Shown here piece by piece: positions 15,330 to 31,900 of a stretch of 64,000 nt of DNA. The DNA is from Klebsormidium nitens (lineage: Eukaryota; Plantae; Klebsormidiophyceae), in the NCBI GenBank assembly GCA_000708835.1, contig DF237313.1:28934-92933 (forward strand), written 5' to 3'. Position 1 is the stretch's first letter. The number at the start of each line of letters is the position of its first letter. Under the pieces are notes generated by a model that saw nothing but the letters and a program-made list of their open reading frames with translations, was not told where the DNA came from and did not search any database. The position numbers and the translations under genes are program-made.

Positions 15330-17332
15330 GAAATTAGACAGTTTGCTAGAAAACCGACTTAAAAGCTGACAAGAAGGTCGATAGAAAAGGAAAAGTTGCC
15401 AGTAACGTCGTTTTCCAATCCGTCAAGTGGAGTAAGGGGCAGCTTGACAGCTGTTACTGTTGTTCGTTTCTGCACACAGTTTTCGTGTGCGTGCAAGTGT
15501 CGTGCTTTGATGGGCACTCTGTTGACCACACAAGCTGCTCAAGCTTCTTGAAACGAAGGTTATCCTCGCGCGTGTCTCCCTGAGCGAAGGCTATAGACAT
15601 AGACTTGATGCACCCGCGCCGTGCAATGTGTCACGCCCCACGCACGCGTCACTGCGAGTGGGTTATGCACACCTGATGCTTGTCATGTTTTCAAAGACAT
15701 TGAGTACGAGGGACTGGAGTGCAATCAAGTCAACGACAATCGCTAGATCTGCGTCGGCACGGCATGCACACCTACAGCAACCTATAATCACATGAAGGCC
15801 GTAATAGATGAGAGTGTAAGCCTCGTGTATACACACTGACTAATACGGTTATATAGACTCTTGAAAGACGATCTGCTGATTTGAAGCGCTTGCACGTCCA
15901 TAGCGCCAGCCTGCTAGGAAGATTCTGCAAGAAAGCTTTGTCGATACGATCGTAGGGGCCAGTCAAAGTGCAGCAAATGCGTTCAAATTACCAGTGCAAG
16001 TCAATCGGCGGACATGCTTATATTGAGGCCGGAACGGGCTGGCAAGCTAGTGCGTCTGCTAACACCAGAAGCAATGCACGCAGCTTCAGGCTTTCAGCAT
16101 TTTTTGCTTGATTCAATCCATCGACTCTGACCGACACTTGGGCTGCATATGTCTCGCTTTGCTTTCCGTATGGGCCCGAGCGAAAGAAGCTTGAACTTTT
16201 GGAAGGCAGCTCGAGTGGATGAAGCTGCACGTGCCCTTAGTTGCTACATCTGCTCATGTTAGAATGTGTAAAAGCATCTGCGGAAGAGTCGCTTCTCCTG
16301 AAACGAGTGGCGGTAATGAAGATATTGACAATCGAGCGCAGATATCGCGGCCTCGATCTCAGCCGCATGCTCTACCGTGTTTTAAGGTTGGAAGTTCCGA
16401 CCACTTTTTGAACAAACACAGTCCTCACTGTCGGCGTAGAGCATTCTGTTCTCCCGTATAAGAGCTACACGCACCTTGCCGAGCAACACGTTAGCAAATT
16501 GCTTCTTTCGAGACTGCAGATCTAATGGCTTTACTGCTCCTATTATACATGTTGCAAGAAGTTTTGAACACTTCAATACATTGAGCGAAATAATCCGACC
16601 TTGTCTGAGGTTCAGGCAGGACCTACCATGAACCCAATTCTACAGCCCGCTTCCTCCAAAACCATCTGGAGCAATCTGGAGTTGCCTGATTATTATATTC
16701 TTTTGTAAGTGGCCGATATAATGCGCTTCGAGAATATAATGTATCCACGACACGAAGGCTAAGCGCCTGGCCCCAAACCAAACAAACAAGGGTTCGAGTC
16801 ATGGGGAGGACTCCACCCTTTTTGCCACCTTTTTTTGCCTAGGCTTTTCGGTCCCATGCACTCGATAGGCACATGGCATTCAAGCATTCAACTCTCCATT
16901 TCGATCGGGTCGCGTGTCATATAAGAGAGGGTTTCAGATTTCAGTAGAACCTACAAGGTATATGACGTCAGAATCATCATATTTTCATCATATACTACTC
17001 CGCGCTTATAATGACCGCTCCGTTAAAATGCAAAAATGGACTAATTGGCTGCTGGGGATACTAATTAGTTGCTTGCAAAGCTTTTGTGCAATGCTTGTAA
17101 GGGTGCGAACTTCGTCCGGTAGTATTGCGGTTGATGGTACGGTGTTCAGAGGCATTGAGGCACTTTTAAAAATTCTCTCATTAAGCTGCCAAAGCAAGCC
17201 AGACTGACGGGGTAACTCGATGGCTGAACAACACATCAGACTTGTTTCATGCAAAAGGGTATATCCACATGGGACGAAAATGGAATGATCTTAAAATTCT
17301 GAAGAGGATAGTTGGTTTAAATGAGTGTTTAT

Positions 17333-17525
17333 GGGAAGACGGCAGAGGAGTGGTTCCTAAGCCTCTGGGGCGTTGCCCCGGCCAGAGAGAGCTCCCGAAG
17401 GAGCCCCCCCTGCCAGACGGAGGCCCTCGGCCTCAACGTCGGGGGATCACCCCCAGCGAGCAGACACCCCCCGGGAGGGGCTCACGGCGGAAGGGTAGAA
17501 AATTCTACGCGACTTCTTGCTATCT
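17333..17525 (-). ncRNA. Candidate structured non-coding RNA, copy 1 (~190 nt, unassigned family)
   Basis: 158-nt core 17334-17491 is 155/158 identical to 27280-27437 and contains five hairpins; it lies downstream (minus strand) of a TATAAA and a GCCCACAA box. Strand and ends are inferred from the promoter, not observed. Confidence 0.55.
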
Positions 17526-17552
17526 GATGCGACACGCCAGCATCCGTCGAGC

Positions 17553-17690
17553 TTTATACGGTTGCAAGAAACGAAGCTTTTGTGGGCTACATGGACCCGG
17601 TAACGTCACCTGCCGTCCAATCTGTCAAGTGGCAGGATCGGACGGCAACGAAGAGGTTTCCCTCGACACACGACCGCTGTCCGCGGTAGA
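17553..17690 (-). promoter_or_regulatory. USE-like/TATA promoter module, copy 1
   Basis: On minus strand: GCCCACAA (17580-17587), 21 nt containing TTCTTGC, TATAAA (17553-17558); upstream GCCGTC...GACGGC inverted repeat and CAGCGGTCG box. Same order and spacing in copies 2 and 3. Confidence 0.55.
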
Positions 17691-18970
17691 TCGACGCTGC
17701 GAATTAGCACGATCCGAGCAACTTCATGGAGGCCGAAGGCAAAACAAGGCTACAACAAGGGTTTCCTTTTGCTATACAAGACTGCAGAGTAGGATTCCTT
17801 ACGAGAATGATGAGACATCTAACATAGAATTAGACGAGACCTGTAGTGTGAGACCTGACCGTTCCGGCTTGAGTAATTTTTGTGGCGTAGTTGAGTGGAT
17901 GCTAAAGCATCGCAGAAGCAACGTGGTAAAAGTACGTTTCTCTACTGAAATCGAGTTACTGCCCGGCATGCGACCATAAACTGAATTCCTTACTTGAGCA
18001 ACGTCGTGGCACCACGAGAGTTGCAAATGTGCTCATTGTTTCATTGAGTTGCCAACAAGAATTACCAGACGGTGGAAGTTTCAAAGCACAAGGCTACTTT
18101 AGTCACTCTCAAAATCAACGCTCTCTCACCATTTTTAGTACTGCAGTAGGCTCAATTGAAGCAGTTTAAAGAGCGCAGAAAACCAGAGCAAGGAAATCTA
18201 CGAAATTAACCTCTTAAGATCCACGTCAAAGTAGCCCTGCTGGGCTATTGTCATGCCATCGTTCAGCAGCTCAACCATCATGTTGAAGTGGTACGGATTG
18301 GCGCGTTGAAGACTACAATGAAGTGGATCTCGCCCCCAGTCTTCAAAGTTGGCCTGCCAGGCAACATGAGAACAAGCTTCAGCACAAGCATTCTTGAAAG
18401 CACGCTTCTATCATTTTTAAAGTCGTCGTGAAGGCGGACCCCAGCTTGTGCACTTCGAACCTCGCGGGAGCTGATCACAAAGATGATCATAACGGTAATC
18501 ATTGTGTGCGCGTGACATACGAGCAATACATGCCATGACAAAACCCATTACGGGAAGCTTTGTACGCTTCAACGCTCTATGTTAGATCGAACACCGTTGG
18601 CAGCGTGGCTCGGCTGAGATTTTCGAACAATTGATGATCTATTTCTACATCGTTTTGGTTGTTCTTCATGAGGCCACGTCTAGCATTGAAGTGCATCGAG
18701 TCGGAAGCACTCTGAATCACTGCCAATGCTTTGCTAGGGCATCGATGTTGTTCTGCTTTCAAGTGGAGAGCAAAGTGTACTTTGACCACCATTTCGACTG
18801 CCAAGCGGGGCCGGGTGACAACAGATGGGAATCGGTCGATTCTTCACCTGCCCAAGAAAACCCGAGCTCATTCTTAACCCTTGCACGATCAACTGATAGG
18901 AAGTAACTCAACGAGAGTTTCAAGGAAACTGAGTGCTCTTAAGTGTCCGACTTCCACCAGCCTGAAACTC

Positions 18971-21900
18971 CTAACACCAAGCCGCTTGAATTGCAACAAC
19001 AGGCACCCGCTGGGCGACGGCCTGCCACGCGTCGACGGTTTGCCACGTGTCCCCAGTCGCTTCCTCCTTCTCGAAATGGTCAACAAACTTCCTGGCTCCA
19101 CGAACCGACACAACGTACCCATCGAAGCAGTCATTTGTCAGCGTCCCTTCGACCAGACTCTTGCTGACGTCCTCCACCGCGCAAGGGTACACCCTCTGTG
19201 CCAGGTCACACTCCGTCCGCGCGCGCACAAAGTTGCTCCACCCCCCTACCAGGAGGAGATCGTAGTTATCCATGTCAACCAGCATGTTGCACTGATTGAG
19301 GCGGTTAAGATCCATAAGATCGGTAGACAGGGCTTCCTTAGCCCCAAGCACTAACCCGGCTTCGAACCCGTCGAGAAGACCGGGGTCGCTCAAACTAGAG
19401 GCGCCGGAAGTAACTTGTTCTGCAGAATCGGCAGAGCTTGATGGCTCCCCATTAACGACCCTCTGAGCTTCATTACTAGCGGCTTCCGTATCAGCTAAAT
19501 TTTGCGGCTGCGCTCCTTCAGAACTGGGCCGCAAGAGAATCTTGTACGCGGCCACTCGCGCATTGCCCGAGTCATGGGTCGTCAGCCCGAGGCTCTCCAG
19601 ACGTTTCACGGCGCCTGTCCTTTCTCCACTGGAGCTCCGCCCTCTGCTTCTATCTCTTTCTTCCACTTTGAATTCGTTGCCGGATGCGCGCACTTCGTCA
19701 TCGCTATCCTTCTCAACCGTTTCGGTGCCACCAAACCGGCCCTTGTCTTGTTTCTCTGATCCGTTGTCGTACGCTAAGAGAGCAAGGAGTCGGTCCTGCG
19801 CCCTGAATTTCGCCATTCCTGGCCGTTTCTCCACTTTATACCGCACCAATCCTTGGAGGCCGCGTAGCACCCCCGTCGTATACGCTTTCATCCCGTTCAG
19901 ATCCGGACCCAACACTTCGTCCGCATACGCATGCATCCGGTTGACCATAGCGTCCGCCTCCTCTCCGTTCGCCAGAACCCACTCAATCGCCGCCGTCAGA
20001 TTGCTCAGGTTGTAATCGACGGGCACGAAATGCTCCCACGGCCGCAGTCCCAGCTCATAATACTCCCAGCACGGAGTCCGCTGTTTCAGCAAAACCGTCC
20101 CCATGTGCAATTCGTGCTTCAACCGGTTGGCCCACCCACAGTTGCCCTCCACATGGATCACTGCCCGGTACGCCTCCTGCTCCGCCCGGGACAACCGCGG
20201 CCGTCCACGTGTCACCATCCCCGCGGCCCACTCCCGAAATCCCCCTACCTGGTCCGTGTCGGACAGCATGACGTCATACAGCTCCGGCCGCGACCCCGCG
20301 CGCACTAGAAAAACCAGCCGCTCGCGGCCGCAGCGCTGCCACGTGTCCTCGCTGACCGCCACCTTGTCTCCACCCCACCCCCGGTCGTCTGCGTCTAGGA
20401 AACAGCCCCGGCCGCCGCCCCCCCGGAAGACCGCCTTGCGGATGCGCAGCGCGGGCGAGTGCGCGGCGCGCGCGGCGCGCGCGTCCTCGAACGCGGCGGC
20501 CCATCGGCGCGGGGGCCCGTCCACGTGCTCGAAGTAGGGGAAGGGAATGTCAGCGGAGCCGTCGCAGGAAACGACGTTCAGGATCGGAAGGCTGACGTCA
20601 GCAGCGTCAGACACTCTGGCGGGGTGATGCTGTCTCTGAGTCACGATGCAGTCCTGGGCGTGGAGAAGCGATCATTATGAGAAGAAAATGGAACTCCTGC
20701 GTTCTACATCTCAGCCGAAAATGTTCAACGGTTACCACAGCTGAAGATCGACAGACGAGAATGCACCAACCCAGCGTCTGCAAGAAAGGGGGTTAGTCAG
20801 CAGCTTCGAACGGACATTGAGGTCATTTTTCCAGCCGTTTGTACCTCGTATTATCAGTGCATCGTTGCTGCAAAACCACGTCACTCTTCTGGCCCACCAA
20901 AAGCCCTCCGCGTCTACCGTTAATGTCAAGTCGCACTTGAACCATCTACGAGATCTTTCACCCGAGTGTCTCTCCAGGGCTTTTTTCCGTGACCTGCAGT
21001 GCTTTCAAAACAGTATACGCCTATCTTCGAACGTCATAGTATTACCCCTCGGAGGGCGAAAAAATGGACAAAATGGTTCCTGACCGCCACAGGTTACGAA
21101 TGAAAGCTTGACTATCAACCGGTGCCATTCCATTGTCATGAATACGGTGGATTGAACTACGACACACCCCTACGGAGGATACGATTATAGAGAAACAGAG
21201 AGACACTTTGAAACGGGAAGTATTCCTCGTTTCGACGCACAGTCATTTGAGAAGCTTCTCACGTCGTGTAGAGAACAGATCCTGCCAGGCTTTGATTCTG
21301 TTTAGAGGACTTCTGATAACAGCGCCATGAAGCGAATCTGTTTCGAACATTCTTTTGAGGGATTGCTGAATAACGTGACAGATGCCCGCTGTAATTCGGG
21401 TTCAGATAGTGGTTCAGATGAATTAGATCTCAAAGTAAATCTCATAACAAGCTGCAACTCCATCTCAGATAGATATATCGAGTTAGGGATGACTGGAAAC
21501 ATACTTTGAAGCGGGTAGGGTCCGGCCAACAGTCAAGTGCGCGCGCGCGCGCTGGCACCCACCTCTTGGCACAACAGGAACTCCACGTCACCTCCATCTT
21601 CAATGTCCCGCATTATTTCGCTGATCAGTTCCAGTCGCATGTTGTACCGGAAATGCATAAATTCCCAAGGAAACCTCCCTCCCCTGTGCTCGTAATACAG
21701 CTTGCCTTCAATAATCTGTACGTCCCGGCACGATTCCCGGTCCCCCGATCGAAGCCCACTTGCGTTGTGGGAGCGGAAACTGGGTCTAGTGAGTACTCCT
21801 CAAGAGCCTGTGTGACCATTTGTTGGATCAGGGGAGAAAGGGGAGTGAGACTCCCCAGAGCGATTCGCTTGTCAAGGCTCGGACGAAAGTGGGTTCCAGC

Positions 21901-22065
21901 TGGCAACCTTGCGATTGATACCTCTCTCAGACGGGCATTCAGTGGATTCATAATTGAGGTGAGCGTTGTGAAATAGCTCCTGGAGATGAGGGACAGCACT
22001 GTAATAGCGGCCACCCAGACTAGCCAACTGCAGACATAGCGCGCGGGCTTGGCAGCCAGAGCCAT
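18971..22065 (-). CDS. Glycosyltransferase family 90 (CAP10/KDELC/POGLUT-like), type II membrane protein with C-terminal extension
   Basis: Exon 18971-20653 has AVIHVEGNCGWANRLKHELHMGTVLLKQRTPCWEYYELGLRPWEHFVPVDYNLSNL (GT90 core). Upstream exon 21563-22065 gives an N-terminal TM anchor (WLVWVAAITVLSLI) and CRDVQIIEGKLY...DVEFLLCQE, joined in phase 0 to DCIVTQR. The upstream exon needs one frame change near 21742-21746. Confidence 0.85.
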
Positions 22066-23399
22066 GGCGCCACCTAATGAAGTATACGACCGACTGGCCC
22101 GAATGAGCCCGATCGGTTCGCTTAAGGGTCTCTCAGACATATGCCAGATCTAGGCACAACTGCATCATCGCCTCGTCGTTTTCAGACTACGTCAAATCAG
22201 CGGCCTGCGTTCCGCTCTGGGCAACGTTTGAACGGAGCTCGCACTGGATCTTAGTTGAGGGAAGCGCCAGATTCGTCAGAAAGGAGCGTTGGTCGGCAGT
22301 AAAAGGGGTCGAGAAAGGACTATGCTACTGTTCGCCGGAATGATTGTCGCTATGCCTACGTGATGCTGTCGTTTCCAAATGATTCCGTTCCGTTTGTGCC
22401 TGGAAGATACGTACGGCCAGCATGGGTCAGCTGAGCGTTATTCGGAAGAGCTGGCAGCGGAAGAGTAGACGATTCAAACTCTACGAGCTGCTTCGTGCAC
22501 TTGAGAGGCCCTGCTTAGCTGAAGTCACCTGTCTTTTCTAACAAAGCCAGGAGATTCTTCAAACAAGAAAGCTATCATGTTTGTTCTTGCTCGCTCGCAC
22601 GTTGTCAGAAGGTCACTTGTCGAGTCTCTCTGTTTCTCAGTGCACTCCCGTCTAAGGGGGTGAAAGACGACGTGATTGGCCGGCGGTCGCTGTCAAATTG
22701 ATTGTACGGATATGCAGAAAGAATCAAACATGATCAAACATGAATTGTGGCTGGTTATACATGGCCTTCTGATGTAAAGCACAGTTCAAAGTCTGATTGA
22801 TTGCACTATGTTTGAGTGTGGTCCTATAGCTACTTGCTATTTTCTAAGATTCCATATAATGATTCAAGAGTGGCCCAAAAGACACAGATGATGTGATTGG
22901 GGATCTCGAAGGCCGGAACGCATCACAACTGCCCTTCACCTTTGCCCGGGGGTATGATTCATTGTGTTGATGTCATGATTGGGTGATCGAGGCATACGAA
23001 CATCCAAGATTTTTCCCGCATCTCGGGCAATGGTTCACGGTCCCTGAAGTGCTTCAGCAACTGGTCCCGTCGGACCGAGCTGTGAAAGTTTCGTGCCGGT
23101 GACAATCCCACCTTGGTAATGCCGAGCTTCTTTCCTTTCTTCTAATCTATAAATTCGATTCCAACACCTTCTCCGGCTGTTCTGGAGAGAAAAACATCAG
23201 TAGATTACCATGGGAGCGATCAATCCCCTCTGATTTCCATTTATTACAGCCCGTTAACGGCCAGCTGGCAGGTTAGGACAGCACCTAGCACATGCATTTG
23301 CATCTTTCTCGGTGCAGGTTGGACCTAAACAACGTTCAGTGCTTAGTATGTTCGTGCTAGCGAGGGACTGTACGCCTGTTTTAGAGTACTGCATTTGAA

Positions 23400-23615
23400 C
23401 AAGACTGTTGAGGTAGCCTTATCCGGTCCTCCATTTGCACCAAAGGCTCGCACAGACATGCCGAGTCTCTCCGTCGCTTTCTTCATCGAGGTCAGCGGTC
23501 GCATATCGAGGAAACCTTTTCGTGGCCGTCAGATCTAGCCACGTGACAATTTGGACGGCAGGTGACGTTACCGGTTCGTTTCGCCCACAAGACCTTCGAT
23601 TCTTGCAATCATATA
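23400..23615 (+). promoter_or_regulatory. USE-like/TATA promoter module, copy 3 (inverted; downstream part lost in assembly gap)
   Basis: CAGCGGTCG...GCCGTCAGATCTAGCCACGTGACAATTTGGACGGCAGGTGACGTTACCGG...GCCCACAA (23583-23590) N21 TATA (23612-23615), then Ns; aligns with the reverse complement of 17553-17760. Confidence 0.7.
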
Positions 23616-24290
23616 NNNNNNNNNNNNNNNNNNNNNNNNNNNNNNNNNNNNNNNNNNNNNNNNNNNNNNNNNNNNNNNNNNNNNNNNNNNNNNNNNNNNN
23701 NNNNNNNNNNNNNNNNNNNNNNNNNNNNNNNNNNNNNNNNNNNNNNNNNNNNNNNNNNNNNNNNNNNNNNNNNNNNNNNNNNNNNNNNNNNNNNNNNNNN
23801 NNNNNNNNNNNNNNNNNNNNNNNNNNNNNNNNNNNNNNNNNNNNNNNNNNNNNNNNNNNNNNNNNNNNNNNNNNNNNNNNNNNNNNNNNNNNNNNNNNNN
23901 NNNNNNNNNNNNNNNNNNNNNNNNNNNNNNNNNNNNNNNNNNNNNNNNNNNNNNNNNNNNNNNNNNNNNNNNNNNNNNNNNNNNNNNNNNNNNNNNNNNN
24001 NNNNNNNNNNNNNNNNNNNNNNNNNNNNNNNNNNNNNNNNNNNNNNNNNNNNNNNNNNNNNNNNNNNNNNNNNNNNNNNNNNNNNNNNNNNNNNNNNNNN
24101 NNNNNNNNNNNNNNNNNNNNNNNNNNNNNNNNNNNNNNNNNNNNNNNNNNNNNNNNNNNNNNNNNNNNNNNNNNNNNNNNNNNNNNNNNNNNNNNNNNNN
24201 NNNNNNNNNNNNNNNNNNNNNNNNNNNNNNNNNNNNNNNNNNNNNNNNNNNNNNNNNNNNNNNNNNNNNNNNNNNNNNNNNNNNNNNNAG
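23616..24290. other. Assembly gap (675 N)
   Basis: Continuous run of N; ORFs spanning it in the ORF track are artefacts. Confidence 1.
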
Positions 24291-24292
24291 AG

Positions 24293-24354
24293 ATGACTCA
24301 TAACCGGTCATGACCGGTAGCATCATATCATATGATGGTCCGGGACCAGGTCCC
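24293..24354. repeat. Cluster of four adjacent short palindromes at the gap edge
   Basis: ATGA-C-TCAT (24293-24301), ACCGGTCATGACCGGT (24303-24318), CATCATA-TCA-TATGATG (24321-24337), GGGACC-A-GGTCCC (24342-24354). Confidence 0.85.
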
Positions 24355-25145
24355 ATAGAAAGCTTGCTGATGAGAAACTTGACATCTCATATTACAGTCA
24401 TGTTAACTGGCCTGGAACATTACTGAAGGTTTGAGCATGACATCACATTCGACATGAAGCAGAAACTTTCAATCTGCGACGCTTCAAACTTGCGAAAGAG
24501 AAGGCTGCAGGAGATGAGCATACTCCTCCGCTCTTCGTGTGTGCGCGAAGGAAGCTCGATGGGACTGTGTAATTGAAGCCCGTACTATTGACTGTCTCAT
24601 ATTATTTGTAGAAATACTCGTATCTTCCTAAACCTTGCTTTGGTCAGTGGCGGTGTTGACAAACGCGCACGACCACGGCAAAAAATGCGTCTGATTGAGC
24701 AGCCTTCCGACAAATTCTTTGCCATGTTTTGCCAGTGGAACTTGCGATGCATGTTTGAACAAAGAGCTCTCGATCTTGTTTGAAATCATGCAAATCATGC
24801 GACTTACAGTCTTACACTCCTGTGCCTTATCGAGCAAAATGTCTGGATCATGCTTATAAGTAGTGGTTGGTTGTTGGTCCTGCCTCTTCCCTGCTCTCCG
24901 GCAAGCGCGACTCGCGGCGCGCTCGCGCCTGCTGGTGGCATCCACCGCTTCTACAAAAGCCTCGAATTTGTAAAAGCTCCAAACCCGCCAATATTTATCG
25001 GCCGAAGTGCGGCCGCGTAGGCCGGTGCACCAGGCCCAGGGTGGCGGCCATTCTACCGAGGGCGCTCGATGTAGCAGGACGCATTCCAATTAGCAGCGTT
25101 CTTTGCAGAGTCCGCGAACAGAAGAAGCGCTGCTGAGGCGCCGCA

Positions 25146-26175
25146 ATGGCGACCCGCAGTCTCTTGAGGTCCTGCGCGTTTTCAGCTCTATCGCTTGTCC
25201 TCATCTTTGCGGTGTTTGTTCAGGAAGGGGCTTCGCTGACGCTTGAAGTCACTGTTCACGTGGATGGCAGCACCAGCTTGCCTGACCCGAGTCTCCTGAA
25301 CGCCTTCCTGCGGAACCAAAGTGGTTTGCTCAACCCGCTGCTCCCTGACCGCCCTCCAATCCAGCTGCAGCTCTGCAACTCCAGCGTTTATTCCCAACCC
25401 TTTTATTTTTACACGCTGCAACACCCGGGAAGTTGCGCTAGCGCTCCAGGGTTGATAAGGAGCAAACCGAAAGCTGCAAGGACGCTTGAGGCAATCTGGC
25501 TAGCATCAGCGGCAGTCATCTTGGTTGCGCTAGCTCTTGCGTGCCTGATCAGCCGTCGGTCAAACTTGTCAGCTGAAGATCTGGCAGACGGCGCGTTGCG
25601 CTGGTGCTATAAGCTGGTGCCCGGCGAACCTGACCGCAGAATGACCGCAGACGACCTTAGTACTTGGATGATTTTCACCTCTTTGCCGGTGCCTTTTGTG
25701 CTAGGCCCCCTCTGCTTTGCGTACGTCGCCGTTGACAAACTCCTCCCAGCCCCGTTACCCGTCCAGCGGCCACAACGTTACGCTCAGCCTTTGCAACATC
25801 AGGAACGCCTTTCAGGTCTACATAGGCTTCTCAGACAGTTGTGACCAAGTGTCGGACTCTCTCTATCCAGGAGTCAGCCTCCCGCAGGTCGAAACGATTG
25901 TTTACAGCGATGACCACACTTTTAGCCAAGGCTGGGCACTGACCATTGTCCTATACTGTGCGGGCGTGGTCACTTGCGCCTTCTGGCTGCTCATCGCCGT
26001 AGGGGCGCTTCTTTACCTTGCGAGAGTCGTGAACTTTCTCTGCCAATGGAAACGGCCTCAGGCCAAAGTGCACGATGTTGAGATGCAGGACGCCACCAGC
26101 TTGTCAGACTCAGATGATGACGTAACGGGTGACGCAATCGGTAGTGGGTCGAATGTGGAAGGTCGGACGGGTTAG
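25146..26175 (+). CDS. Intronless putative membrane protein (signal peptide plus about three TM helices) split by a single frameshift; function unknown
   Basis: ORF 25146-25844 has a signal-peptide-like start (FSALSLVLIFAVFVQEGAS) and hydrophobic segments; overlapping ORF 25717-26175 in the +1 frame continues with N-X-S/T sites, another TM segment and an acidic tail. Removing one base around 25707-25740 joins them. Confidence 0.6.
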
Positions 26176-27278
26176 CGCGGCTGCTCGTTGATCTTGGGCT
26201 TGAAGCAGGCTTGACGCTGGTAGATGATAAGCGATTGAGCTCAGCGAAGGCAGAGAACCACGTCAGTGATAGGTCGATAAGAGGGGAGTAGGATCACCTG
26301 TAAGCAAGCGGTAGATTTAAGATCCAAAACTAGAGGTCTTCATGGGCGGGCGATACAGAGAAGCGAGAAAAAGAGGGGCAAACTTACGTCTCTACGCGGT
26401 CACGCGAAACATATTTTAACGTGAAGGCGCGGTTCTTGACCTTTATTGCTTCTGAGGAATTTTAGTACCTTGGCTCTGACTTTTGATGACCTTCAACTAG
26501 TTATAAGAGGCCTAGAAACCGTTTCATTGGCGGTTATATCTTGGCCCTCTAGCCGTCAACTTTCCGTAGTCTACGTGAAACCGTTGACGATCAACATGAT
26601 GCTGCTTCTGTCCTTTGCTCACGTCCCCGACCCATTGAAGCGCATTTGTTTTGACGCCTTTCAGTGCTTTATGAAATAGGCCGAGTAGCACGATATGGGC
26701 GTCACATACATGCACCTTTCATGTACCAGCACTACGTACCAAGAATTTTCGAACAGCCAGCGGCTTCGTATTGGAATCCATGCGGATAAATAGACTACGG
26801 AAGAATCAGCCTCCCAATGACTGGTGCAATAAAAAGTCGATGAAAGCGGGCAATGGTCGAATCGGAAAAAGTGTCTTCATTGAGCCGCTTCTTGGGTGGA
26901 TAATCCACCATGTTTAATCCGCTTCTTACGTTACACGTGTTGGATGAACACAGCTATCTATCTCGTTTTAAAAAATCAATTTAGCAGCTTAAACTCCCAA
27001 TATGTGATTTGCAGTCCCGACTCGGAGCAACATCTTAGCAGTATGCTTATTGCCTCGCCGCTTCAAATATACTTGTCAATGGTCCCCTCCAACATAGCAA
27101 ATTGTCGCTCTTATTTATATGGATATTGAAGCGCAGCCAATATCTAGTAAGAGGTAAACGCTTGAACTTGAGTCCTGGCTGCGAGCAGCCCCTCATATCA
27201 TTCACGTGTCATTGGAAAGTGAGAGACATAGTGGTCTTGAAAGCTCAATAAGTTGTGGTTGTTCCGATAGAGTAGAAT

Positions 27279-27474
27279 AGGAAGACGGCAGAGGAGTGGT
27301 TCCTAAGCCTCTGGGGCGTTGCCCCGGCCAGAGAGAGCTCCCGAGGGAGCCCCCCCTGCCAGACGGAGGCCCTTGGCCTCAACGTCGGGGGATCACCCCC
27401 AGCGAGCAGACACCCCCCGAGAGGGGCTCACGGCGGAGGGCGTTCCAGCCCTTCAACGCGACGTCTCGCTATCT
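27279..27474 (-). ncRNA. Candidate structured non-coding RNA, copy 2
   Basis: Core 27280-27437 near-identical to copy 1; putative start AGATAGC (27474) lies 32 nt from the first T of TATAAA (33 nt in copy 1). Confidence 0.55.
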
Positions 27475-27500
27475 GCAGAGCCAGACAGCAGTTGTCGACA

Positions 27501-27625
27501 TTTATATGGTCGCAAGAATCGAGGGTCTTGTGGGCGATGTAGGCCGGTGACATTAGCAGCCGTCCGATTCCCAGATGGCAGGATCTGACGGCTACGAAGA
27601 GGTCACGCGCGACCGCTGTTCACGG
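27501..27625 (-). promoter_or_regulatory. USE-like/TATA promoter module, copy 2
   Basis: Minus strand GCCCACAA (27528-27535), 21 nt with TTCTTGC, TATAAA (27501-27506); upstream GCCGTC...GACGGC inverted repeat and CAGCGGTCG box retained. Confidence 0.55.
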
Positions 27626-28938
27626 CGTCCAAAGAAAGACGGAGCGCATCAGTGACGAAGCAAATCGTACAATCCAACAAGACAAGAGAAGATAAAGTTG
27701 CTACCCGCCCAACTCGAAGTGTTACATGGCACTGCTAAAGCTTCACAATCCCTTGATACGAATGCATGATGTGTGAGTCTGAGCCGGACCAAAGCGGGTC
27801 CTGCTCGGAAGATGCCCACCCTCTGCCTCTCGGTCCTCCGGTCTCACTTCAAGGATGCAAGTTCAATGAATGACTTTCGATCTCCTGTAAGATGAAAAGT
27901 ATGAAGCAGACAGGGTTGGTGGAACTTGTACTATCTGCTGCGCATCCGAAGTGCAGTCTGATTACGTTGACAAGAATGACTTTGGCTGCGGATGAAAGCT
28001 GCAGAGAATCTTCGGATGCGCGTTTCAATGCTGCATGGAAGTAAATGAAGTACGACACGAGTCAAAGTCGTCTCTTTGGAATTACATCCAAGGTGCATTA
28101 AATTTGAACAGGCAACTTGGCGCCTTCTCTCGAGACGGGCTCGCCTGAGTGGCCAGTTCCCCGTCGTACTCAAAGACGCATTGTCCTCCCACCAAGCGGG
28201 CACAGTTCGCTTGCTCTCATTCAGGACGACGTGCACGTACGGGATAGGGCTGCATACGGACTCAAGTCCTGAGAATTTTGACCAAAATCGACAGTGACGG
28301 GCAGCTTCTGCATGCGCATTCACGACGATTGGCATACCATGGCCGGCATTGCCAAATCAAGCATCACCGTACTGAGGCCGGCTTTGCATATTGACAGAAG
28401 CATAATATCACAGTAGTATCATCACTGCTCCATCACTGCATCTATATACGAGCATGCAGGGTGATTGTTGAGTGGCCACATCGGCCGGATGCATACGTTA
28501 CAGCAATTAGCGAGTATGCGCAATTATGTGGCCATCGAGTAATCAGCAGTGCATGCAGTGCACAGCTATGTACGTGCTGTGCACAAATTAGTTCTGAACG
28601 TCCAAACCAAGCTTCGAAATCGAAAGAGCAGGCCGGTGACCCGCAGATTCCCAGCTTCCGACCGTCAATCGGATGCATCTAGCGTTTCGAGCAAAGTTTT
28701 CAAAACAGGCCCGCACTCTTGAATATGTACAATTGTTCGCTCCATCTTGCTTCAAAGCCGTCCATCTCATGCCAAGATACCTTCTCGTCGTTCTGCCCGT
28801 CAATAGGCGCCTCACAACTTCGATCACGCCAACTTACTACCCAGCTCTGAACAGTTTTTCGATTAGCTGCATTTGAGCTTCTGCACAGCCATGTGTCATC
28901 GTGACCACAGCTTCGAAGCTTGGCTGCCTGCCTATACA

Positions 28939-31900
28939 TTACAAAGATTCACTGCCAAGGTGAGACGAGTGAAGCAGCTGGGAGTTCTGGTCGAGCCCCG
29001 CCGTCAGCCACATGCGTTCAATCTGCACAACTTGGATAGCGGCGATTCAGAAGGGTGAAGAAGCGAAGTCCGACCACTTTCGATTCTTTGAATCAATTCA
29101 ATCGTTGAAATGGAGACAACAGTCTCTGTGACTATGGGTCCGCATTCCAAGCGTAAGAGGACGCCCTGGTAAGGCAAAGGTTTTCCTCAATTCTAATCTC
29201 TCAATCGCGAATGCTGTAAGGGACCATCCTGCCTGACCTTTCCGAACCCATTGGTTGTAACAATTGTTTGCAGTTGAGGAGACCGTAGAAGCAGGTCAAG
29301 AAAGACGCAATGTGTCCGATTCGAGAATCGGTCTTTTGGAAGAAGCCAGTACTTCTCCAGCAATTCGAGGGGCCAGCTCTTACCTCGTCGTATCTGAGGC
29401 GGCTGAGCCGTAACGGCCTGCCCCGCTTCAAGAAAGCGTCCTCCTGGAAAGACACGCGGTACGACTGGGTTGATAGAGCAGCATCTAAGTTGTACAACGC
29501 AGATCAGCAAGCGAACCAAAACGGTTGTGTATGTAATTCGCAGTTTTTCAAGAGAGTAAAGAAACTTGCTGTACTGGAAATTAACACTTGCACACACCTT
29601 ACCGAGAAAGTGACCGGATTCTACAGCAAGAGTGTTTGACACCAATGTTCTGCAGGCTCCATATCGTTCTGCATCATGTCCTTCAGAGATCCGATCGAAA
29701 GAACATGGGCACTTTCAACGCTTTGTAGCATCTTTTCAACTTCAAAAATCATCCTTGACAAGACTCGCCGCCTCTGACACCAAACTAAATGCTTTCCAAC
29801 GTTTAGCGCAAAGACACGAAGACACGCGCCGCACCCCCTCACCTCGCCGTGGACGTCTAGATAGATGGACGGCGCCATGCAGGCGCGGTCGCCCCTCAGG
29901 ATCAGCATCTGGGTCGACCGGAGCAGCAGAAAGATACCGATGCCCATCCCACCTGCAGAAAACCACCTCTATTAGCGACTGTGCCAGAGTGATTACAGTG
30001 AACACAAGCCAACTTTTGACAGCAATTGGACGGGGCCCGACTCGTCACAGGATTTTAGCAGTAAGAAGAAGGAACGGTGGTCTGTGAAGGAAGCTGCGAA
30101 GACTGATGACGAGCAAGCGCTGCACTTGAACGCGCGAAAGAAGGCAGAGCGTCCGAGGGAAGGGGGTTCGCTGATCCGAGAGTTACTGCAGAATCAGGCA
30201 GACTGTCACTTTCACATCGGAACGGATTGCTGTCAGGATGCGCTTCCAGATCAGTCTGGACATGCGAGAGGGAGACGAAGGATTGTTCTACACGGAATGG
30301 ATAACGGAGATCGATTCTCACAGATGCCCGCCCTGAGGAGGTAGAGGTTGAAAGGAGGCACTCACACTCAGCCGCGTGTCGGGAGCACTCCCCTCGGCCC
30401 TCCACGTGGCAGCACTGGCTCTTGCAGCACACCAGCGTGCCGCACAGCAAACACAGCGCCGGCTCCCTGCACCAGGAGACGTCAGACCCACACGTCAGTT
30501 CTGACGACACCTTTGAGCGGCGCGCTTAAGGAGTCCTTTGACAGCCCCCGTACCTCAAAGAAGCCTCGTTTACGTCGCGGGAGATTGTATACATGCTTGC
30601 GGACAGGAGGGACTGATTCGGCTGTCGTAGGAAAATTTGCAGTGGATCTCACCTTGGCACCGTCCCGCATCGTCCACATTTGCGGTTCATCTCGGCCAGA
30701 AGCAGCTCCTGCCAACAACAAAAGTGAGCATCTCAACCAGAGGACCAGAATGAAGCGGAAGATTGCAGCCTGTTGTGCAAGCACGCCACATTTCTGGCGT
30801 CCAATCATTCCCAAAGCATCGGCCTGACTGATCGGGCTGCCTAAGAATCTCCCAGATCCGAAGCCGCTAGACTGCGCTGAATGTCAATCCTTCTCCTCAC
30901 ATAAGACGATGACGATGAGTCAACCATTCCCATGACTAAGAGGTCTGGGCTTGACAGTTCAACGCTTGTCTTCTCCATAGCCCATACGTAGGCCTACTTC
31001 GCATGCAAGTGCGTTTGTCTGAAGCGAGTACGCACCTGGAAGACGTCCGGCAAGTCGACGAGCTTGAGCTGCGCACGGCCTGAGAGGAGGAGGTGACGTG
31101 GCACGACCGGCGCTGTTGGCGGCATTACTGCAAACAAGCAGGGCAAGTTTTGAGCAGACTGGACTTGGAGAAATCGGATTGACTTGCAGACGGTGGAAGA
31201 TCATGGCTTCCAACGAGCCCCGCTGACGGTCAGAGCGGTTGCCTTCTGCCGCCTCTACAGCACCACAGCCTAATGTCACCTAGCCCAAACACACTTTGGA
31301 TCGCGGGGAGAAAGATTGGAAAACAGCGTGCCCAGCACTTGGCGACGAGCAGCGTGTTGTTCTCAACCCGTCTTTCAGCAAAGAAACAGATCAGCGGCGT
31401 CTGCTTAGCTGCAGAACGATTTTAGAGCAACTCAAAAGCCCGTTGTCTCACCTTGTTTCGAAGGTGGAGCGATCCCCATGGCTTGAAGGACAGATGGAAC
31501 GGGAGGCAGGCCCAAGTAGCGCTCCCAGTACTGGTAGCTCATAAGGTCACCTGCAACTCAGAAAGAGCGGCCTTAGAAGAATGCTTGCAAACATGGAACC
31601 AGTTCTTCGGTGGTTGTCAGGCTGTCCGACTGGTTTCATACTTTTAAGTGGGAATGGATGCACTGCCCTTTGAACCGCGGTTGATACAGAACCATAAGGG
31701 AGAATTGCGCACTGTGTGGCTGCCTGCTTCGAAAACCCTTGCATTGTGGATGGTCCAGAATTCCGGTGCTTGCGCTGCAGCAGATGGCCAGGAAAAGCGA
31801 ATGGGGTCGCAACGACGTGTTCCACTTTACGACTTCCCATGAGCATTTTTGAGGGTGGCAATGTCTAGATTCCGCACGGGTTCTGCCTCACTAGAGTGAA

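Follow-up and report, generated by a model that had tools for sequence, protein, structure and literature searches.

The 64,000-nucleotide (nt) stretch of the Klebsormidium nitens genome analyzed here (contig DF237313.1, positions 28,934 to 92,933; referred to as the window, with positions counted from its first letter) harbors three copies of an intergenic element in which a promoter-like module precedes a GC-rich, transcribed-looking segment. Copy 1 (17331-17759, minus strand) and copy 2 (27277-27681, minus strand), both delimited by local alignments, represent whole units; that of copy 1 comprises a distal upstream part, a conserved upstream block, the promoter module, and the transcribed-looking part. 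Copy 3 (23405-23615, plus strand) is present with its upstream part alone, cut off by an assembly gap (an N run at 23616-24288) that is expected to hold the remainder of this copy. About 228 nt would be expected after the TATA of copy 3, and these would fit into the estimated 673 N. An assembly break positioned exactly within a repeated unit is typical of the behavior of short-read assemblers at repeats. When assessed with blastn, the sequence to the right of the gap (24289 onward) matches no part of the element, and the window contains no further copies. The annotated genes in the surroundings are a kinesin gene that ends at about 15329 (plus strand), the GT90 glycosyltransferase gene KFL_003640080 (18971-21613, minus strand), which stands between copies 1 and 3, and a gene for a PRT6/UBR1-type ligase with its 3' end at 28939 (minus strand). 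The open reading frame (ORF) at 18971-20644 (minus strand) is 100% identical to the KFL_003640080 glycosyltransferase of K. nitens. All three copies of the element are intergenic, and the genome annotation calls no gene over any of them.

Local alignment sets firm limits of homology at 17331-17686 for copy 1, at 27277-27644 for copy 2, and at 23469-23615 for copy 3. The motif (C)TTGTTG/CTGTTG is common to the three copies and is found 63-88 nt upstream of a conserved CAGCGGTCG block; its presence in all of them suggests that the unit is really about 430 nt long, the length that had been given in an earlier note on this DNA. The 5' edge of copy 1 was placed at the shared CTTGTTG, and its 3' edge is sharp (17331).

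The promoter module consists of the motif GCCCACAA, which resembles the upstream sequence element (USE) of plant small nuclear RNA (snRNA) genes, followed after a spacer of 21 nt by a TATA box. This GCCCACAA-N21-TATA arrangement is present exactly three times in the 64 kb, namely at 17555-17587 and 27503-27535 on the minus strand and at 23583-23615 on the plus strand, with a chance expectation of 0 in 100 shuffles. In copy 1, the TATAAA box occupies positions 17553-17558 and GCCCACAA positions 17580-17587; the corresponding elements are located at 27501-27506 and 27528-27535 in copy 2, and at 23612-23615 (TATA) and 23583-23590 (GCCCACAA) in copy 3. The distance to the TATA box is identical in the three copies, both when it is counted from GCCCACAA (21 nt) and when it is counted from the 11-mer that corresponds to the plant USE (19 nt). 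Further downstream, the sequence AGATAGC begins 33 nt past the TATA start in copy 1 and 32 nt past it in copy 2. GCCCACAA is invariant, amid differing surroundings, in five promoter variants, i.e., the three copies of the window and the promoters of two paralogues found in public contigs (see below), and the CCCACA core is kept in all of these. Counted from these sequences, the family comprises at least five promoter variants genome-wide.

Upstream of GCCCACAA, copy 1 possesses a conserved block (17597-17686, minus strand; 80-87% identity between the copies) that contains CAGCGGTCG (17671-17679) and the inverted repeat TGCCGTCC...GGACGGCA (17611-17647). This GCCGTC/GACGGC inverted repeat exhibits little covariation between the copies and thus probably acts at the DNA level, as a protein-binding element. 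Each unit contains the octamer CTGCCGTC / GACGGCAG three times, in both arms of the inverted repeat (17611-17647) and in the last letters of the downstream core (17335-17343), and its placement is the same in copy 2. Judging from this distribution, the promoter and the 3' end might be marked by one and the same factor through this octamer; alternatively, provided that both are transcribed, base pairing of the upstream arm with the 3' tail is conceivable. Just upstream of GCCCACAA, copies 1 (17602-17609) and 3 (23563-23570) carry GTGACGTT, a TGACG-type bZIP/as-1-like site, which is mutated to TAATGTC in copy 2.

Conservation is strongly graded along the unit. The core of copy 1 (17331-17494, minus strand), delimited by the alignment with copy 2 and predicted by folding to form about five GC-rich hairpins and a 3' tail ending in ...CUGCCGUCUUCC, is identical to that of copy 2 (27277-27440, minus strand) at 159 of 164 positions (97%). 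The predicted 5' part of the RNA of copy 1 (17495-17525, minus strand) begins with AGAUAGC (17519-17525; 27468-27474 for AGATAGC in copy 2) and continues with a copy-specific hairpin, GUAGAAUUUUCUAC, that contains UUUU; 25 of the 32 positions after AGATAGC are shared by copies 1 and 2. Identity amounts to 42/57 in the segment between the USE-like element and the start, to 74-80% upstream, and to about 80% in the upstream block, and local alignment detected no similarity between the flanks of the two copies. The similarity of copies 1 and 2 ends abruptly at the same nucleotide. The minimum of conservation within the unit is the stretch of about 25 nt between TATA and AGATAGC, and conservation climbs at AGATAGC; we read this rise after a poorly conserved stretch as the signature of a transcription start in a gene with an external promoter. 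The framework of these observations had already been described in the earlier note: the three copies with GCCCACAA, 21 nt and TATA, as well as the distance of 32-33 nt from the TATA start to AGATAGC in copies 1 and 2, were reproduced, copy 3 is indeed cut directly after its TATA (the N run starts at 23616), and the promoter side is the more diverged one. The 158-nt core with 3 differences mentioned there holds 3 of the 5 differences of our wider 164-nt core, and its abrupt 3' stop lies within 2 nt of the point at which we find the similarity to end.

The minus-strand core of copy 1 folds with a minimum free energy of -89.1 kcal/mol into a structure that equals the centroid; the plus-strand core attains -74.1 kcal/mol (z = -0.1), so that only the minus strand folds well. 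The strand specificity of the fold derives from three G-U pairs in the longest hairpin. Folds of the whole predicted transcript gave z-scores of -1.9 and -2.5. Twelve distinct variant positions, collected from public contigs and from the comparison of copies 1 and 2, were placed on the copy 1 fold, and none of them breaks a pair. One pair of positions (17412/17382) exhibits a compensatory G-C to A-U double change in a paralogue that we refer to as Y, three positions (17386, 17387, 17388) are G-U/G-C switches, and the other seven are unpaired, in loops or single strands. In 20,000 trials with twelve random transitions each, zero breaks were reached in 1%, a figure that is indicative only, because the sequences are related. 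The 5' hairpin has been exchanged rather than mutated: it reads GUAGAAUUUUCUAC in copy 1 versus GAAGGGC...GCCCUCC in copy 2, and the site is occupied in a related organism by a hairpin resembling that of copy 2 (GAAGGG...CCCUYC in both). The replacement of one hairpin by another at a single site points to a structural constraint rather than to a sequence constraint.

Parts of a 601-nt query are contained in 10 of 24 public runs labelled with K. nitens or a relative, none of which holds more than 37% of the words of the query. Four runs from four studies, all of them contig sets, were compared with positions 17100-18000 (901 letters), and their coverage proved to be confined to 17176-17651. Coverage limited to the element signifies enrichment over the single-copy flanks; this argues against whole-genome DNA and in favor of RNA sequencing (RNA-seq) as the origin of the contigs. 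Copy 1 itself is matched exactly by a contig over 17356-17609. Paralogue Y, present in three studies, differs from copy 1 at 10 positions and by a 1-nt deletion over 17335-17456. A second paralogue, Z, does not differ from copy 1 upstream of 17356; the loop of its last hairpin and its tail are different, and it keeps the stem AGAGG/CCUCU and GCCGUC. The contig of the related organism has 5 differences in 140 nt and possesses a better 5' stem, GAAGGG/CCCUUC. Two further promoter fragments are about 85% like 17594-17651, and both continue as CGCCCACAAG. In some contigs, a segment that equals copy 1 (17356-17609) continues into a 3' tail and flanking sequence unlike those of the reference, and another contig confirms the reference junction (17176-17385); the discordant contigs stem either from a very recent duplicate of copy 1 elsewhere or from the path that the assembler took through the repeat.

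Rfam 15 yielded no match at gathering score in the 64 kb, and at E<=10 copies 1 and 2 gave only sub-threshold noise from microRNA and archaeal small nucleolar RNA (snoRNA) families. The earlier note, which had proposed this search, had recognized in the element none of the hallmarks of a list of known non-coding RNAs (ncRNAs), and this assessment stands, since no Rfam family was found and Sm site, C/D boxes and telomerase template are absent. A spliceosomal Sm-class snRNA can be discarded, as neither copy 1 nor copy 2 contains an Sm site (RAU3-6GR), and so can a box C/D snoRNA or U3, as UGAUGA and CUGA boxes are absent from both copies. The template of telomerase RNAs of the Viridiplantae comprises one telomere unit plus at least 1 nt, which would be CCCTAAAA or CCTAAAA in Klebsormidium (PMC8287931); no template permutation of CCCTAAAA, CCTAAAA or CCCTAAA is present in copy 1 or 2. 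RNase P/MRP and signal recognition particle (SRP) RNAs were rejected because inspection by eye revealed neither a CR-I of the GAAAGUCC type nor a helix-8 motif and because Rfam gave no match. A tRNA-derived short interspersed element was rejected as well: ARAGORN found no tRNA in the window, and no A or B box was seen by eye on either strand. The ORF at 17242-17979 (plus strand) is not a protein-coding exon, given an in-frame stop in copy 2, the 1-nt deletion in paralogue Y, and the lack of homologues; a search for spurious ORF calls on element-bearing contigs, with two open plus-strand frames as protein queries, gave a single meaningless low-complexity match only. No conserved ORF or gene is found downstream of the core. 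Scans of public collections (two of metagenomes, one of viruses, one of prokaryotes) with patterns of the core gave 0 matches, and a bacterial promoter/terminator scan, which is irrelevant for this alga, was empty. We found no description of such an RNA from Klebsormidium in the literature.

Taken together, we consider the chances somewhat better than even that the three copies are members of a new multi-copy gene family, restricted to the Klebsormidium lineage, for a structured small ncRNA. Each unit would carry its own external promoter, built from a distal block with CAGCGGTCG and the GCCGTC/GACGGC inverted repeat, from GCCCACAA, and from the TATA box. Transcription would start about 32-33 nt past TATA at AGAUAGC, i.e., at 17519-17528 in copy 1 and at 27468-27476 in copy 2, and would yield a discrete minus-strand RNA of about 195 nt, perhaps of about 230 nt if a G-poor tail is included. 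In the predicted fold of this RNA, the 5' domain carries an exchangeable hairpin, a series of GC-rich hairpins comes next, and CUGCCGUCUUCC forms the tail; by analogy with snRNA-type genes, the RNA may function as the protein-bound scaffold of a small ribonucleoprotein particle (RNP). A more explicit proposal, which we put forward tentatively and hold to be rather less than an even bet, is that of an undescribed class of small RNA, nuclear or cytoplasmic, that would be abundant, capped, free of a poly(A) tail and confined to the Klebsormidiophyceae, with snRNA-type promoters and its own RNP; the invariant hairpin row and the CUGCCGUC tail would bind the protein, and the exchangeable 5' hairpin would vary by paralogue. 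As far as its sequence is concerned, the RNA matches no described family, and a new RNA class is possible.

Several observations weigh against a discrete RNA that is made from snRNA-type promoters. The three copies agree with the plant USE consensus RTCCCACATCG at no more than 7, 6 and 6 of its 11 letters, and the spacing to TATA equals neither that of the RNA polymerase (Pol) III class (23-24 bp) nor that of the Pol II class (32-34 bp) of Arabidopsis (PMC8287931), whose rule may not be that of Klebsormidium. By its sequence, the GCCCACAA motif could alternatively be a Site II-like RGCCCA element, as found in Pol II promoters of snoRNA and ribosomal-protein genes (PMC4660826); copies 2 and 3 read CGCCCA, unlike the Site II element. 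The fold z-scores are modest overall (-1.8 to -2.5), and 6 of 18 contig differences were too close to contig ends (within about 30 nt) to be placed on the fold. The contig sets probably derive from RNA-seq, though none of the runs is recorded as RNA, and neither the ends nor the strand of a transcript can be read from contigs. Strand-specific total RNA-seq with rRNA depletion is reported for three Klebsormidium species (PRJNA700859; PMC8287931). The contig that matches copy 1 exactly passes TATA and GCCCACAA and extends to 84 nt upstream of the predicted start. Beyond the 3' boundary of the core, contigs continue for 155 nt in the case of copy 1, for at least 346 nt in that of Y and for about 600 nt in that of Z; these overruns could reflect read-through merged with antisense or upstream transcripts, a longer transcript, or LTR-type RNAs that include U3 (LTR, long terminal repeat). 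Neither a Pol III T-run nor the plant Pol II 3' box CA-N3-10-AGTNNAA follows the core in copy 1 or 2; TTTT is absent within 100 nt of the core of copy 2 and first appears at +35 in copy 1. Moreover, a unit of about 430 nt with two sharp edges, unrelated flanks and both orientations that takes a promoter of its own along to new sites also has the appearance of a mobile element. Consequently, two claims of the earlier note were upheld only in part. That of a functional ncRNA gene retains its conserved, strand-specific and structure-preserving part behind a looser promoter, but the predicted RNA of about 190 nt is overrun by the contigs; that of a USE plus TATA promoter retains the invariant GCCCACAA at fixed spacing, but not a close match to the USE or either of the Arabidopsis spacing classes.

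The sequence directly after the core is depleted of G. In copy 1, a G-free tract (17299-17330, minus strand) leaves no G for 31 nt, with the first G at +32; the 30 nt that were read beyond the core of paralogue Y are likewise free of G, and in copy 2 four G occur among 35 nt (27243-27276). Depletion equal to that of the copy 1 tract is found in only 6 of the 63,258 35-mers of the window. The tract is composed of C, A and T, follows a GC-rich core, lacks sequence similarity between the copies, and may either belong to the RNA as its 3' tail or mark a zone of termination. With regard to the polymerase, our preferred guess is Pol II as the putative enzyme that transcribes the unit, because the T-run is absent, because the predicted transcript of copy 1 contains an internal UUUU, and because contigs run downstream; the short USE-TATA distance, which is nearer to the Pol III class of Arabidopsis, speaks against it.

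The main competing explanation views the element as a solo-LTR-like or other non-autonomous mobile module, with the variable upstream half as U3, carrying enhancer and TATA, and the structured half as R-U5; the copies of the window would be dead insertions, and the R-U5 leader would be kept by selection on active master elements. Besides the size, edges, flanks and orientations of the units, it would account for the fact that copy 1 begins with TGTTG and ends with CA, for a TATA box that, like that of many LTRs, precedes the 3' end by about 230 nt, for contigs that span the 'promoter' half and enter unlike sequence as LTR-containing RNAs would, for the roughly 11 nt that paralogues Y and Z have in common beyond the end of the core, and for the assembly break inside copy 3 that is typical of repeats. 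We nevertheless regard it as unlikely. Target-site duplications occur at chance level (about 4 five-mers are expected per copy; 1 and 3 were found), in line with the earlier note, which had seen none, and the termini are inconsistent, as copy 2 ends with TA instead of CA. No TGG resembling a primer-binding site follows the core in paralogues Y or Z, and the viral, metagenome and prokaryote contigs scanned are devoid of matches. Pfam identified no gag, pol, integrase or transposase domain in 18 ORFs, 16 of which lie around or between the copies, and an ordinary GT90 gene stands between copies 1 and 3. Furthermore, divergence is strongly non-uniform (97% identity in the core versus 74-80% upstream versus none in the flanks). 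If the insertions were recent, intact target-site duplications should show; if they were old, the core has been conserved in place at 97%, which implies a host function or concerted evolution. Two specific arrangements were rejected. Copies 1 and 2 (9,946 bp apart, same orientation) are not the LTRs of one retrotransposon, since the interval holds the host gene KFL_003640080, the inverted copy 3 and no gag/pol, and since the two are only 74-80% alike outside the core; copies 3 and 2 are not the terminal inverted repeats of a DNA transposon, since their outer ends are the least conserved parts and no transposase lies inside.

The lengths to which the contigs run beyond the core bear on a different explanation, according to which the element is the promoter and structured 5' leader of longer Pol II ncRNAs of several hundred nt with locus-specific 3' parts, so that a discrete 195-nt RNA would not exist. 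The lack of a terminator or 3' box after the core and the TATA-type architecture of the promoter fit such RNAs as well. Yet copies 1 and 2 lose their similarity abruptly at the same nucleotide, the downstream sequence is without a gene or conserved ORF, poly(A)-selected libraries would, for a small RNA gene, reveal nothing but read-through forms, and the contigs may merge overlapping or antisense transcripts; in our view, this explanation is quite improbable. Still further removed from our expectations, and in our estimate very improbable, is transcription of the whole conserved region of about 320-355 nt from a point further upstream, in which case the 'USE' and the 'TATA' would be parts of the RNA sequence. 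It would be compatible with the contig that is exact over 17356-17609, with the paralogue pieces covering 17594-17651, with the complementarity of the upstream GACGGCAG to the 3' CUGCCGUC, and with the z-score of -2.5 for a 360-nt fold. It is at odds with conservation that is lowest in the 25 nt or so before AGATAGC and then rises as at a transcription start, with the contig of the related organism that begins about 9 nt after the predicted start, with the little covariation in the upstream hairpin, and with the lack of a conserved promoter further upstream. We continue to favor a family of small structured ncRNA genes with external promoters.

Two further observations concern the neighborhood of the copies. 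The 7.3 kb between 21613 and 28939 lack an annotated gene; this interval includes a GC-rich stretch (24800-26000; GC 0.56-0.58) with an ATG-initiated ORF of 232 amino acids (25146-25844, plus strand) without a Pfam match that could be an unannotated gene. The GT90 gene contains a 32-nt direct repeat starting with TGCCACGTGTCC (19041-19072 and 20337-20368, 1.3 kb apart), which includes the CACGTG core of a G-box and may be an internal protein repeat or due to chance.

No algae are more closely related to land plants than the streptophyte algae, whose ncRNA repertoire is almost unexplored. If our interpretation is true, a new RNA family, and probably a new RNP, would be added to the plant lineage. 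The promoters of this family would provide a second data point, besides the work on telomerase RNA, on USE/TATA promoters before the land plants and would bear on the question of whether the Pol II/Pol III spacing rule already existed. If the element is instead a mobile promoter-leader module, it would be a repeat at which the reference assembly is disrupted and from which read-through transcription arises beside host genes.

A comparison with known systems helps to place the element. Solo LTRs of plant LTR retrotransposons resemble it in their length of about 430 nt, their internal TATA, their variable 5' half and conserved 3' half, and the TGTTG...CA termini of copy 1; the element differs from them in that target-site duplications do not exceed chance, no transposon body is located nearby, divergence is non-uniform, and copy 2 is without the terminal CA. 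The Class I RNAs of Dictyostelium are multi-copy, lineage-specific small structured RNAs of about 42-65 nt whose genes have an upstream element in common with snRNA genes; in contrast to the predicted Klebsormidium RNA, they are much shorter, have a different fold, and stem from an unrelated lineage. AtR8/BoNR8 is a Brassicaceae-restricted Pol III ncRNA of about 260 nt with a conserved structure, and AtR8 was found by in silico promoter prediction (PMC7151572). Like the predicted RNA of Klebsormidium, it is a lineage-restricted structured RNA in the range of about 200-260 nt, and both were picked out by their promoters. There is no sequence relation between the two, and AtR8 is a validated Pol III transcript, whereas the Klebsormidium RNA is predicted. 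Moreover, the Klebsormidium family has at least five copies and is without a terminator, in contrast to AtR8, which we take to be a single-copy gene. Plant type-3 genes, to which those for U1-U6, U3, 7SL, MRP and telomerase RNA belong, possess an external promoter in which USE and TATA stand at a fixed spacing (PMC8287931). The Klebsormidium unit departs from them through its 6-7/11 match to the USE, its spacing of 19-21 nt versus 23-24 or 32-34, and the lack of a T-run, 3' box, Sm site, telomere template and Rfam match. It shares with them a CCCACA-containing element at a fixed distance from TATA, a predicted start about 30 nt past TATA, an organization as small, multi-copy, intergenic units, and a predicted RNA that is far better conserved than its promoter. 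The closest known kind is thus the plant type-3 snRNA-style gene, together with the orphan RNAs that have been found through such promoters.

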